Assembly: GCF_964204645.1 (NCBI RefSeq)
Contig: NC_134034.1
Coordinates: forward strand, 2,046,072-2,110,071
DNA length: 64,000 bases
Direction of reading: 5' to 3'
Source: Tubulanus polymorphus
Lineage: Eukaryota > Animalia > Nemertea
Shown here: positions 2,625 to 57,166 of the stretch, in pieces
How positions within the stretch are numbered: position 1 is the stretch's first letter
Layout of the letters: the number at the start of each line of letters is the position of its first letter
The notes under the pieces: model-generated
What the model saw: only the letters and a program-made list of their open reading frames with translations
What the model was told of the DNA's origin: nothing
Database searches by the model: none
Translations under genes and position numbers: made by a program

Positions 2625-5702
<3,078 letters not shown>

Positions 5703-8333: not shown

Positions 8334-9381
8334 TATGCTTTCAAGTCAGGTTGAAATAGACATTAGTCTGTCTGGGATTACTTCAATCAGTAGTCTGAAA
8401 CCACCCCTTCAAACATACTCCGTATACAGAAGAGTCGGCAGCCTGGATCAAACCCCAAGGTTGGACTCTCTTCTGGTTGTGTACCATATCCATAAGGGAA
8501 GAAATAACCATGTCTGAGGTTTACTTGAATAATTGCACAACTTGCATAAAGTTTATTTTCAAAAACAGATCATACATATCGGTATCATATTCAGAAAGAA
8601 ACTAATCAATACAGCATTTTGATGTGACGCTATTTTTCGGAGGACCCCGTCGCGAGTTAAATATCTCCAAACAAGCCTTCCTGAAATGCATTCTAGTCTA
8701 ATACGGAAGAAGTTTGATATGAGCGATATTTTTAGAGCCTTTTAATCGGTATCGGCACAAATGCCTCCAGGATATTTATTGCCCCCCCCCCCAATTTTAA
8801 CTTCAATTTCGATCAATCTTTCGATTCAAGTACTTCAGACCTCATTGAAAATGTTCCACAGTTGTGAGTTAGAGTTAACTCTGAGTTAAAGTTAGTTCAT
8901 TTTCAATGTTTTAACCCAGGGTCAATTCTTAATTCAGAACTGTGGAACTGGACCCACATTTTCAATGAGGTCAATGGTTCAAACTTAACCGATTTAACCA
9001 TTGATGACACGGCGCCCTCATCTGCTAAAGTGACGGATCACTAACTATAGTAGAAGATGACTAATTATCAGGGTAGCCAATAACTGGAAATCAGGCAATT
9101 GTCATAAATTCCTTTAAATCAATATGGTCACAATTTTACTATCAGGGGCTTGTTGCTCAAAAGTTGGCAAAGTGACGACAAATGAAATTGCAATGTCACC
9201 GTGGTCCACTGGTTAACTTGAAACAACTTTTGCTCAACTCATCGCTGAATTTAACGACTATCTAAATTCTAAGGCGGTTTTAGAAAAAAATGCGTGAAAT
9301 AATCGCTTTGATAAAAGAAACTGAAGTAGATGCTCCGCGAGAAAAGTCCGTCTGCTCCGTCGATAGAGAATCCGTCTGCTG

Positions 9382-53112: not shown

Positions 53113-53200
53113 AAGGGGATAGCGCGTACGCAGTCCCCCACTACCAGAAATTGTACACCCGAGTCTCCCACATTTGGGGAGATCGTATGGGTCAACCAGT

Positions 53201-53202
<2 letters not shown>
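53113..53202 (-). ncRNA. U1: U1 snRNA, 3' half (end of SL2, SL3, Sm site, SL4) of an interrupted gene
   Basis: Minus strand AGACTGGTTGACCCATACGATCTCCCCAAATGTGGGAGACTCGGGTGTACAATTTCTGGTAGTGGGGGACTGCGTACGCGCTATCCCCTT matches the metazoan U1 3' half. Confidence 0.95.
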
Positions 53203-53241
<39 letters not shown>

Positions 53242-56200
53242 CTCAGATACTACCATATATATTGAAAGCCTAAAAATTTTAAATGATGAGCTGTAGTAAT
53301 TAGAGAGAGATTCGACTATGTCTATAGAAAAGTGTTCAAATAGGTATGTTAAAGTTAAGTTGGCGGCTGATGTTTATTGAGAGCTAAGAGCTAAAAGCAG
53401 TGAAAATGAAGCGAGTTTGATATGGCAGTCGGTCTCGTATCCTAAATATCGGATACGATAGTCCTTCATCATTGGCTTTTTTGTTTTTGCTTAGGGTTAG
53501 GTGTATTTGGATTTTGGTAGGTTAGTTTCCTGTTGTTTGACTATGTGCTGCAAGAAAGGGGGACATTGTAATAGTTAAACAGTTAAATAAGCATTTAAAT
53601 ATTTGAAAAGTTGGAAAAGTCTTCTGCTTTTCGTCTCGAGGAAAGAGGAACCTGAAAAGGAATTAAGAAATTTCTTTGAATTAATGGCGCGCTGCGCTGC
53701 GCTGGCGCTGCAAATTTGCTTTGCTTATTCGCTGGTACCGATAGTAATAATTTGGTGTAGTCAAAGGATTTTCTGTATAAGTTATAGTACGTACAGGTGG
53801 GATAGTACTAAATACGTGGGATGTAATCTTTTATTATTTATCTAATTTTTACGTAATTACATATACGTATAAGAAACACTGTTTCTTTGTCAGTTAGTCT
53901 AGGATAGAGTTTCGTTGGGTATGTTAGCAGGTAGGGAAATTTTTGGGTTTGTGTCGGAAACGACTATAACACAAGTTTCCTGCGGGGTGTATACATTAAG
54001 AATATGTCAAGACGGGTAGCAACAGCATTTAATAAAATAGTGAACGCTGTTCGGGGGTTATCAGGGTGACGGTTCTGAGTATACATATGTATAATTAGGA
54101 TATTATATAGTTTTGATCTACAGTATGTTGCTATAGCATTACGCACTGTAGATCTGCATAAGGTTTAATGCCATTTTTAGACAATTTATGCTGGATTACA
54201 GCGTGGTATGATATCTATTATAGAGTGTACGTAGCTATTTTCACAGCAGTACGTGCACAAGCTTATGTATAAGGAATACATAAATATGCTTATATATACA
54301 GGTTCTATATAGAGTTGGTGTCAGGAGTTCATCTACCAGTCATTTCACTTTGGGTATTTATAATAGTATCGTTTGAGGGTGGATTTGGAAGTTAGATCAA
54401 GGGGTATTAGAAGTTTTCTATGATCTGTAATGTGTAGCTATATAATATATTTATATATGCATTACACATAAGACAGGTCTGTTTTTGCTGCTGATCTTTT
54501 TGGGCGGTCGTTCGTATCAAGAGACGCCTGTGCATAATGTTTTCCTTGGTACGAGATAAAAGGTGTACCAGTAATGTATATGCCTTGAATTCCTTTGGGC
54601 TTTGACAAACGCAGATCGTTCATGCAGAGGAGACGGTTGTCAGATATACGTATTCGTCGAAAATTGGTAGCGTAATAATGAACGTTACATTTGGGGTAAT
54701 TTTCAATTGTGGGGTATCAGAGTGAATATTCTGATTTTGCAGAAGTCTAGTCGGGAAACTAGTTTTGATCTATAGTGTGTAGCTTTGTGCATTACACAGT
54801 ACAGATCTGCAGATTTGCCGTTTTCTGAAGTGTACGTAGCTATAAATACAGCAGTACGCACAGATGCATATGTATAAAAATACATACCTATATATGTATA
54901 GTTGGTCTTACAGCCGCTTCGCTTGGGGTTTTACCAAGATAACGTATTATGGTGGTTTATACGGTGTGTAGCTATAATATATGTTGAAGCAGTACACGCC
55001 TGTATTAACCCACAATTTTATACAGCGGTGATAGTCTTTCAGATATTCTATATCTCAGCATGTGTAGTGCAGATACAGAGATTATTGAAAAGTAAAAGGG
55101 AGGTTCCGTTCATGTCAATACATATTTGACTTCCAGGTTTAAACTCCTCTTTTCAAAGCGTATTTGGAGAGGATGGTTCTATAGTATAGTGATCACACAT
55201 ATGAAGAGTTTGGTATTATATGGTTGTGTAGCTATTATTGTACAGCAGTACACACTCTAAACAACCCTGTACTTTTATGTACAGTCACGTAGAAACGCCT
55301 GGAGGAAAAGGAAAGAAAAAGTTGCCGTTGGTTTCAATCTTTCTATTAGCAAGCAGAGAGAGGATCATATGGGTTATAGTCTTTACATATTTGAAAGTAG
55401 ATTCGTTACAAATTAGGATCACGCGTGTGTCGAGCCAGGTTCATATTGGGATATTGTATATATGTTTATAAACGTATTACACGCATGTAAAGAGAATATG
55501 ATTTGTGGTGGCGGATTTCCTGAGTTTTAATGTACGGGCATTCAAGCGTAGTATAAATGGTTATAAAGGGTTTGCCCCGATATTATTTTTGAATATGTAT
55601 GAAATTTTAGTGATGTATACGTACATATCTACATATACCGACATATACATACGTATTCATATATACACACATATACATATAGACGTTGTGTTTTTGAAAA
55701 ATAATACCAAAATAATACTGCGTACATAGACTCAACAGTTGTTTACGATATATTAGTATTTCTGATTTTATTTTCTCTTCTAAACTTTGCTATTTGATTT
55801 TTAAATTCTAGTATAGGGGGTATAGGTATAACGTTTTTATGCTTAGTTTGGTTTCTGTGTTTCCAAATGATGAATTTATAGGTTGTGATAAATATATTGG
55901 CGTTGTTCTCAGCCTGTTTGTCTTTGTACTTAAATTTAGGATGAAAGAAAAATATCAGTTCCCTATCGAGGGTATTGTTCAATAAGGTATCTGAACTCGT
56001 ATTTTTCAGATATTCAAGCAGAGAAGTTTTTATGGGTTGTATATGTTGACACAGTATAAAGGTGTGATCTAAGGTTTCTTTTTGATTACAGTGTGGGCAG
56101 AAGGCAATGTATTTACCCTTTGACATGGGTAGTACATCATGTACAATCCTGTAGTTCAGTTCCTGGAAGTTGTCAGGCATTGTTTTTGACCAGATGATTT

Positions 56201-57083
56201 TCCAAATTTTTTCGTTGATTAGATGAGGGTTTCTTCTTTGGATGTTAATTTTAATTTTTTCAAATTTAATAAGGTGTAGGTATAGAGTTTTCAAAGTGTC
56301 TGTCGGTTGGGTCAGGTCATATCCATTGTCTTTGATCTCTTGTTGTAGTAGATTGAGTATCTGATAGTCTGGTCGAGTGGTTAGTTTTAATGGAATGTGT
56401 CTTATATCAATATTAGGGATAATTTTCTTGATCTTTAATGATCCAAAGGCATAAATAGTGAAGTCAGCCCATTGTGGATATATGTGTTGCATGGTTAGCT
56501 GTTTTAGTCTAATAATTTTTTGGAAGAGGTGTGCTTTGGCTTTTTGTTTTATATTCGTAACTCCACATCCTCCTTTATCTAATGGTAGGTACATTGTTTC
56601 TCGAGATATTGTCGGCATTTTATTGTTCCAAATGAAGTTAAATAATTCTCCTTGGAGTTTTTGTTCATACATTTGGGGGAGTGGGATAAATTTTGTTATG
56701 TACCATAGTGTGCTGAGAATATAAGTGTTAGCTAAAGTCGCTCTCTGTCTAAAGTTGATGTTTCTAATTGTCATTATTTTAAAAGTATTGGTAATTTTTT
56801 CCAAGAGAGGTGTCCATAATTCTGAATTTGTCACTTTCCCAATTTTTAGTCCTAAAATCTTAATAAAGTCTTTAATATATTCTGTCGGGTATATATATTG
56901 TGGTTTAGGGTTTATCGAAAGTATTTCTGTTTTTACGGTATTTATTTTGGAGCCGGAGGCTTTACTGTATTCGTTAAAAGTTTCAAAGGTCGCATGCATC
57001 TCATTTGGAGATCTAATAAAAACATTCGTGTCGTCAGCATATTGGGTTAGTTTAGTTAAATTTTTACCGCCAGGATGCATTAT
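53203..57083 (-). mobile_element. 5'-truncated L1/Tx1-like non-LTR retrotransposon inserted in U1 snRNA
   Basis: Poly(A) tail (T run 53204-53239), ~2.5-kb 3' UTR, ORF2 fragment, and TSD ACCAGTCT at 53195-53202 and 57084-57091. Confidence 0.93.
55743..57080 (-). CDS. ORF2 C-terminal fragment: RT (YADD onward) plus CCHC zinc knuckle
   Basis: QYADDT, ASGSKIN, KILG, FIWNNK, LPLDKGGCG, CPHCNQKETLDHTFILC; 445 codons without a stop. Confidence 0.9.
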   Translation of the reverse strand: MHPGGKNLTKLTQYADDTNVFIRSPNEMHATFETFNEYSKASGSKINTVKTEILSINPKPQYIYPTEYIKDFIKILGLKIGKVTNSELWTPLLEKITNTFKIMTIRNINFRQRATLANTYILSTLWYITKFIPLPQMYEQKLQGELFNFIWNNKMPTISRETMYLPLDKGGCGVTNIKQKAKAHLFQKIIRLKQLTMQHIYPQWADFTIYAFGSLKIKKIIPNIDIRHIPLKLTTRPDYQILNLLQQEIKDNGYDLTQPTDTLKTLYLHLIKFEKIKINIQRRNPHLINEKIWKIIWSKTMPDNFQELNYRIVHDVLPMSKGKYIAFCPHCNQKETLDHTFILCQHIQPIKTSLLEYLKNTSSDTLLNNTLDRELIFFFHPKFKYKDKQAENNANIFITTYKFIIWKHRNQTKHKNVIPIPPILEFKNQIAKFRRENKIRNTNIS

Positions 57084-57166
57084 ACCAGTCTTTGTGCAAT
57101 GACAGGCCTCGCCATAGGGGCACCGCCTTCCAGATCACGGTGAGCACCCCTGTGCCAGGTAAGTAT
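57084..57166 (-). ncRNA. U1: U1 snRNA, 5' half (splice-site recognition end, SL1, SL2 loop) of an interrupted gene
   Basis: Minus strand ATACTTACCTGGCACAGGGGTGCTCACCGTGATCTGGAAGGCGGTGCCCCTATGGCGAGGCCTGTCATTGCACAAAGACTGGT. Confidence 0.95.

Follow-up and report, generated by a model that had tools for sequence, protein, structure and literature searches.

A LINE lineage of Tubulanus polymorphus that probably homes to histone H4 genes and whose youngest branch also lands in U1 snRNA genes

Site-specific long interspersed nuclear elements (LINEs) are known from ribosomal DNA (rDNA), telomeres, microsatellites, and spliced-leader, 5S, tRNA and U2 genes. R2 and R1 in rDNA and SLACS, CZAR and NeSL in spliced-leader genes, all of them site-specific LINEs, are thought to depend on the promoter of the host gene. 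Here we describe a LINE family of the nemertean Tubulanus polymorphus, family A, one copy of which splits a U1 small nuclear RNA (snRNA) gene in a stretch of 64,000 nucleotides on contig NC_134034.1 (C10:2046072-2110071, hereafter the window). The family was followed through the genome assembly (268 Mb, 77 contigs). We consider it probable that family A belongs to a LINE lineage that homes to histone H4 genes and borrows their promoter, and whose youngest branch also lands in U1 loci.

The described elements that invite comparison fall into three kinds. Within the L1/Tx1 group, Keno uses the snRNA gene U2, Tx1L inserts in Tx1D, Mutsu in 5S rDNA, and Kibi and Koshi in microsatellites (PMC4494074, PMC4640811). 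Like family A, these are LINEs with an apurinic/apyrimidinic endonuclease (APE) that enter a multicopy target at a single site and in a single orientation, a likeness that holds at the level of the L1/Tx1 group. Family A differs from them in its apparent target, the protein-coding H4 gene, together with U1 rather than U2, and in its leaky specificity, since one of its four young copies lies elsewhere. The second kind is Utopia, a LINE on a low-copy snRNA gene family (U2) in which some families are weakly specific (PMC4640811); it has a restriction-like endonuclease and a U2 target, unlike family A. The third is Dada-U1; by 2015 no other transposon had been reported to target U1 genes (PMC4640811). 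In zebrafish U1 genes it inserts in one direction at one site (PMC3706591), which lies ~15 nt downstream of the nick that family A uses in U1. Dada-U1 is, however, a DNA transposon with a DDE transposase, a 6-bp target site duplication (TSD) and an unrelated mechanism. The only snRNA-gene specialists reported by 2015 were Keno and Utopia on U2, Dada-U1 and Dada-U6 (PMC4640811), and the list of Tx1-clade targets in the SINEU paper includes no U1 and no histone genes (PMC4494074). Within the literature we searched, we found no LINE specific for histone genes or for U1, which does not prove that none has been described.

The U1 gene of the window lies on the minus strand in two parts, 57166-57084 and 53202-53113, as read from the letters themselves. 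It is split by an insert (57083-53203) in U1 sense, a 5'-truncated, polyadenylated element of the APE and reverse transcriptase (RT) type with a short TSD. The original prediction had described two U1 halves flanking a same-sense, polyadenylated RT element, and this was correct to the base. The features are as follows.

57084 to 57166, minus strand: 5' part of the U1 snRNA gene, nt 1-83, from the letters and a partial match to RF00003; the promoter region lies at higher coordinates.
53113 to 53202, minus strand: 3' part of the U1 snRNA gene, nt ~76-165, from the letters and a partial match to RF00003 (48.1 bits).
57084 to 57091, minus strand: upstream copy of AGACTGGT, of which the last 5 nt, CTGGT, are microhomology with the element.
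53195 to 53202, minus strand: downstream copy of AGACTGGT (the TSD), from the letters.
53203 to 57083, minus strand: the family A copy c1, 5'-truncated in the RT domain of open reading frame 2 (ORF2), without ORF1 and endonuclease.
55743 to 57080, minus strand: open ORF2 remnant of 445 aa, comprising the RT from YADD onward, the thumb and a putative zinc-binding region at the C-terminus.
53240 to 55742, minus strand: 3' untranslated region (3'UTR) of 2.5 kb, common to all family A copies and without long ORFs.
53204 to 53239, minus strand: poly(A) tail of 36 A, followed by a single G at 53203.

Both parts of the gene were matched by the Rfam U1 model at a relaxed E-value threshold, each below the regular threshold (3' part 48.1 bits, E 4e-10; 5' part 42.0 bits, E 2e-8). 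At the gathering threshold Rfam found no intact U1 and no other match over the whole window, which is expected because the gene is split. The 5' part and the 110 nt upstream of it are 98.5% identical to the U1 gene that holds another family A copy, c3. Since even the upstream 110 nt are nearly identical to those of another U1 gene, the target of c1 was a normal, promoter-bearing U1 gene.

The 8-nt TSD of the original prediction, AGACTGGT, does occur at both junctions, but five of its eight bases (CTGGT) are also found in the family A element just upstream of the point at which c1 is truncated. Because CTGGT is common to target and element, the 5' joint formed through microhomology, which leaves 3-8 nt for the true TSD. 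The 5' end of c1 falls a few codons ahead of the RT motif YADD, and the copy is 98.9% identical to positions 4451-8326 of L036, the locus with the full-length copy. Its ORF2 remnant corresponds to aa 697-1144 of the intact ORF2 with 100% identity and was matched in Pfam by RVT_1 (E 2e-6) and weakly by zf-RVT. The CCHC of the original prediction is the putative C-terminal zinc-binding region of ORF2 and not a knuckle of ORF1, which c1 lacks. With ORF1 and the endonuclease missing, c1 is unable to move by itself. It is a dead-on-arrival copy of a young, low-copy LINE.

Genome-wide DNA searches of all contigs with the last 324 nt of the element and with the ORF2 remnant returned only about six copies of family A in the 268-Mb genome.

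c1, this window: 5'-truncated in RT; within a U1 gene.
c2, C12:11063507-11070908: full length, ORF2 with one TGA; in anonymous DNA.
c3, C10:2391275-2398658: full length, 7.4 kb, ORF1 and an ORF2 of 1144 aa both open; within another U1 gene.
c4, C10:8390246-8396148: 5'-truncated; within a histone H4 gene.
c5, C10 ~8.53-8.54 Mb: old and rearranged, 85-96% identical piecewise and mostly ~90%; in a decayed H4 unit.
c6, C10 ~1.0514-1.0520 Mb: old 3' fragment; ~22 nt beyond an intact U1 gene.

Full-length copies, for which the original prediction called, were recovered as c2 and c3. Over its 7.4 kb, family A consists of an ORF1 with one CCHC knuckle, an ORF2 with APE endonuclease, RT and a putative zinc-binding tail, the 2.5-kb 3'UTR and poly(A). 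Pfam assigned Exo_endo_phos to aa 9-237 (E 1.2e-9) and RVT_1 to aa 530-778 (E 2e-40) of the c3 ORF2; zf-RVT scored 18.3 bits, a weak match under the cut-off of 27.5, and zf-CCHC in ORF1 scored 27.3 bits, above the cut-off of 20.8. The copies bear the marks of target-primed reverse transcription: tails of ~20-45 A, TSDs of 3-8, 13 or 15-18 nt, and truncation of c1 and c4 at different points. Among solved structures, the best relative of the family A ORF2 is human L1 ORF2p (E 1.8e-74 over aa 6-881). Family A is thus an APE-type non-LTR retrotransposon of the L1/Tx1 group, an assignment that holds at group level and does not separate Tx1 from L1. APE and RT domains, poly(A) and TSD bear out the proposal that a LINE of this group entered a real U1 gene by target-primed reverse transcription.

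The best relatives of family A in protein databases are 30-38% identical. Word-indexed and exhaustive HMMER searches of 1.84 billion representative proteins returned none above ~38% identity, and an atlas search of family A gave nothing beyond APE and RT.

Because the spacing from ORF2 to the 3' end is equal in four copies, the 2.5-kb 3'UTR belongs to the element. It holds five spaced copies of a hairpin-like motif (window 54237-55234, minus strand), each made up of a GT-rich arm, ~10-20 nt, and then ATAGCTAC[GT]ACAC, and ending in TAGCTAC. All young copies keep this layout, and the motifs may form a 3'UTR structure read by the RT. Just past the ORF2 stop lies a TA/TG-rich stretch (window ~55637-55682). 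Sub-threshold Rfam matches to mir-297, mir-1277 and mir-3149 at 55591-55686 fall in TA/TG-rich, low-complexity 3'UTR and were judged to be chance.

Both full-length copies, c2 and c3, start with a piece of a host gene. Each begins with ~50-80 nt of H4 5'UTR, followed by ATG and nine codons (MSGRGKGGKG) and only then by the element proper, and this leader shows no difference from the H4 genes at their 5' end. The leader of c2 starts 26 nt after the H4 TATAAAG, at the presumed H4 transcription start. That of c3 starts ~60 nt further in and is joined to U1 through TAC microhomology.

The same junction was found in an H4 gene. To the left of c4 are the H4 promoter (TATAAAG), the H4 leader and ten H4 codons, joined to the element after the same GGA as in c2 and c3. 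To its right are poly(A), GGGCGGTAAAGGA and the remaining H4 coding sequence, so that c4 is a clean H4 insertion with a 13-nt TSD. At the H4 target, the bottom strand is nicked after codon 5-6 (...GGCAA/GGGCGG, the slash marking the nick), and the 5' joint of the element follows codon 10 (...GGTAAAGGA/). The H4 frame is closed at once in family A, by GCT TAG.

Seven H4 genes were found in the genome, six intact and one broken by c4, all in a single tandem array with ~10.2-kb spacing (C10:8357118-8427216). The interval from 8377532 to 8390216 in this array is ~2.4 kb longer than the others, which suggests an extra insertion in that unit.

The H4 junction is not confined to family A. A pattern search of the genome for the ten H4 codons returned the six intact H4 genes, c4, c2, c3 and three further places. 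At these three, ...GGTAAAGGA (in one of them decayed to ...GGTAAATGA) is followed by different but homologous element heads.

C10:8524250: sister head preceded by an H4 promoter that shares 96.5% identity with the live ones; leads into family B.
C10:8609629 and C10:8646279: sister heads of a third type, with leaders but no promoter, one of them from the same ATTCG.

The ORF2 pieces of family B are 53-66% identical to family A. Past the head at 8609629, the ORF2 remains are badly decayed (32-51% identical, with dozens of stops). The sister heads also close the H4 frame early, by TAG 4 codons past the junction at 8609629, by TAG 9 codons past it at 8524250, and by TGA within the decayed tenth H4 codon itself at 8646279. 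Relatives with 53-56% ORF2 identity occur only at C10:8.52-8.65 Mb, adjoining the histone array, and all other LINE families in the genome are ~30-39% identical to family A. Judging from these sequences, the H4 junction is older than family A, and its specificity has been kept across diverged lineages. Since neither the nick nor the 5' joint changes from lineage to lineage, real recognition of the H4 site seems likely.

Head-to-tail stacks in one target are typical of site-specific LINEs, and c5 provides an example: past its poly(A), the 13-nt duplication recurs in decayed form, and a further element head comes next. The H4 lineage shares such tandem stacks in one target with R2, R1, SLACS, CZAR and NeSL. 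Those elements live in RNA genes, and R2, SLACS, CZAR and NeSL have a restriction-like endonuclease, while R1 belongs to another APE clade. The H4 lineage would also differ from them in borrowing the TATA-box promoter of an mRNA gene transcribed by RNA polymerase II (Pol II), and in copying the leader into new insertions.

The surroundings of these stacks (C10:8524000-8548000 and 8609400-8656100) form a "graveyard" adjoining the histone array, with a decayed H4 promoter and leader. It contains stacked and nested copies that represent three or more lineages of the H4-homing LINE, as well as a piece of a different LINE (RT motif near L055:6500).

L1 elements sporadically copy upstream host sequence when transcription starts at an upstream promoter, a process known as 5' transduction. 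The H4 lineage differs in that several diverged branches all begin with one host leader, which stops at one and the same nucleotide. One leader end across diverged lineages is what would be expected if the host promoter were the regular promoter of the element. The simplest reading of the leaders is therefore a regular 5' transduction, in which the source copies would have sat at the H4 site and been read from the H4 promoter. A resident copy in H4, without a promoter of its own, would be transcribed from that of H4. Full-length cDNAs would then carry the H4 5'UTR and ten H4 codons at their start, and an in-frame TAG within 2-9 codons would end the H4 reading frame. We infer that one site in the replication-type H4 gene is the home target of the lineage and U1 a secondary or newly acquired landing zone, in or beside which the youngest branch has landed three times.

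The copy in the second U1 gene, c3, occupies the U1 position of c1, its poly(A) being followed by GACTGGTTGACCC... The junction of an A run with GACTGGTTGACCCATACG, that is, of poly(A) with U1 from nt ~79 onward, occurs exactly twice genome-wide, in the window and at C10:2391257. The insertions differ in their 5' ends and TSDs, c3 being full length with a TSD of 15-18 nt and c1 truncated with one of 3-8 nt. Their flanks match only over U1 and ~110 nt of promoter and are unrelated further out. Private differences over 3861 aligned columns are star-like (15 in c1, 11 in c3, 12 in c2 and 19 in c4), and 4-5 variants common to c2 and c3 are not in c1, which is as distant from c3 as from c2 and c4. 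Given these differences in 5' ends, TSDs, flanks and variants, c1 is not a converted copy of c3 and the two insertions are independent. We reject gene conversion between c3 and c1 because of which variants are shared.

A third copy, c6, lies ~22 nt beyond the 3' end of an intact U1 gene with a short duplication of its own (~ATGGAA), and all three family A insertions in or beside U1 are in U1 sense. According to a genome-wide U1 scan, the ~20 U1 genes amount to roughly 3.3 kb of the 268 Mb. We calculate a probability of ~1e-9 that two of the four young copies would lie inside them by chance. The U1 insertions of family A are far beyond chance, and the earlier argument that the hit in the window was not random holds: c3 uses the nick of c1 in a second U1 gene, and c6 lies just past a third. 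The genome-wide search with the 3' end of the element, intended to show where other copies lie, did find this second copy at the U1 nick, but it placed c2 in anonymous DNA and c4 and c5 in H4. The outcome that the original prediction had named as refuting it, copies at unrelated sites, has thus come true in part. Searches of the sequence around c2 revealed neither an RNA gene or tRNA nor a convincing ORF. Two of about six copies are inside U1; the rest lie in H4, next to U1 or in anonymous DNA.

The nicks used by family A follow short A runs: GGCAA/GGG in H4, CACAAA/GAC(TGG) in U1 and GAAAA/ATGG at c6. A loose preference for A runs is a habit of L1-type endonucleases. U1 holds only two AAA runs, so that for an element already drawn to a U1 gene a repeated nick at CACAAA/GACTGG needs no special recognition. 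The position of c6, beside U1 at an unrelated sequence, points to attraction by the locus. U1 loci may attract the element as loci, being intronless, highly transcribed, non-polyadenylated Pol II genes like the histone genes, and within them the L1-like endonuclease would nick just after an A run. Rather than recognition of a U1 motif, we thus favour attraction at the level of the locus, combined with a loose rule for the nick.

Family A is not the only LINE in U1 genes. Besides 16 intact genes, the U1 scan returned the halves around c1 and c3, a single fragment and, as two weaker matches, L017 and L018. Scanning all U1 loci for interruptions at the position seen in the window thus yielded c1 and c3, but the two other interrupted genes are split at another position by a different family.

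L017:399-1517 (C10:1354241-1355359), U1 sense: insert in a variant-type U1, split at nt 24-38.
L018:428-1515 (C10 ~1832337-1833424), U1 sense: insert in a variant-type U1, split at nt 24-38.

Both inserts are 5'-truncated LINE pieces with poly(A), with TSDs CCACCGTGATCTGGA and CCACCGTGATCTGA, and their nt 24-38 junction occurs exactly twice genome-wide. They are 72-83% alike over their aligning parts, which suggests separate subfamilies. A full-length member of this second family is ~32% identical to family A in ORF2. The family is dispersed, with copies on C7 and C3 whose alignment to the L017 insert is reported as 100% identical. Its nick follows no A run, so its endonuclease must choose the site differently. 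A LINE lies in or abuts at least five of ~21 U1 loci, and the remaining U1 loci have no additional LINE coding pieces within 1.5 kb. This count fits U1 genes being a landing zone in the genome.

Several of these results weigh against H4 as the home of the lineage and U1 as a secondary target. Two of the four young copies sit in U1, including c3, the only copy with both ORFs open, and U1 may by now be a genuine target and not a by-product. The H4 genes of the assembly hold no full-length family A copy, so that H4-resident source copies are presumed from the leaders. A search for sequencing runs containing the element returned DNA runs and no RNA run. An unrelated LINE family has hit U1 twice at one exact site without an A run; these insertions fit a general hot spot and are uninformative on family A specifically. 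The group-level classification, which leaves Tx1 and L1 together, belongs among these points as well.

Tentatively, we see as possible a broader account, in which the lineage lives in intronless, non-polyadenylated, multicopy Pol II genes (replication-type histone and U1 snRNA genes), is drawn to these loci and is in the middle of a switch from the 7-copy H4 to the ~20-copy U1. The draw might come, for example, from a shared histone-locus-body or Cajal-body environment or from the special transcription and 3'-processing machinery of such genes. That a switch would be under way is suggested by the only copy with both ORFs open, which already sits in a U1 gene.

It is rather unlikely that the element has a sequence-directed dual target, with the endonuclease or another DNA-binding part reading a motif common to the H4 site and U1 nt 73-82 (AAAGGACTGG versus AAAGACTGG) and U1 mimicking the H4 site. 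The best local alignment of the 30-nt H4 target with the whole of U1 does fall exactly on the U1 insertion site (AAGGACTGG versus AAAGACTGG), and both U1 insertions share a single nick. However, 36% of shuffled U1 sequences match as well, so the alignment is not significant. Moreover, the bottom-strand nick lies 13 nt upstream of CTGG in H4 but 2-5 nt upstream in U1, and the sequence at which c6 inserted beside U1 is unrelated.

The original prediction went further and proposed, as a possibility, a U1-specific family using U1 as a safe harbour, for which the H4 leader would have to be a one-off 5' transduction. We give this very little credence. Two independent insertions at one U1 site, a third beside U1 and the residence in U1 of the sole copy with both ORFs open are what it would predict. 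Yet one exact H4 site holds both c4 and c5, c4 with its 5' joint at codon 10, and three diverged heads join H4 at that nucleotide too. No family A copy carries a U1-derived leader, the relatives at 53-56% identity occur only by the histone array and never in U1, and c2 is in neither H4 nor U1. The H4 junctions already largely refute a U1-specific family. A single insertion of c3 into U1, with c1 arising by duplication or gene conversion between U1 genes and later deletion and hence no recurrence, is scarcely credible: a GA dinucleotide and tail length are all that separates the 3' junctions, and ~110 nt of upstream sequence is common to U1 genes, but c1 has its own microhomology 5' junction and shorter TSD, lacks the 4-5 variants of c2 and c3, and is flanked by unrelated sequence past the U1 promoter.

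Two side observations concern other sequence in and around these loci. A 167-nt stretch with 100% identity occurs in opposite orientations in L040, where it lies in a ~290-nt interruption of the old copy c6 (minus, ~1191-1357 of the reverse complement), and in L036, in the flank of the U1 gene bearing c3 (~8728-8894 of the reverse complement). The stretch probably represents a young and short mobile element. Elsewhere in the window, a 340-aa open frame at 4680-5702 (plus strand) matches tubulin (GTPase and C-terminal domains) and is an ordinary host gene exon.

An H4-homing LINE that borrows the H4 promoter, with U1 as a further landing zone, would be a target-specific APE-type LINE with a new target class and a possible target switch in progress. 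A new kind of safe harbour would come with an APE-type LINE that homes to one fixed nucleotide in a protein-coding gene, and likewise with a LINE that regularly rides a host Pol II promoter and closes the host frame by an early stop. Sequence-specific retroelement proteins are under development for transgene insertion at multicopy loci (PMC11371274), and we suggest that the H4/U1 LINE may be of practical interest in this respect. With seven H4 genes, one of them broken, and ~20 U1 genes, T. polymorphus would offer a natural case of specificity being kept, loosened or switched in a small target family.

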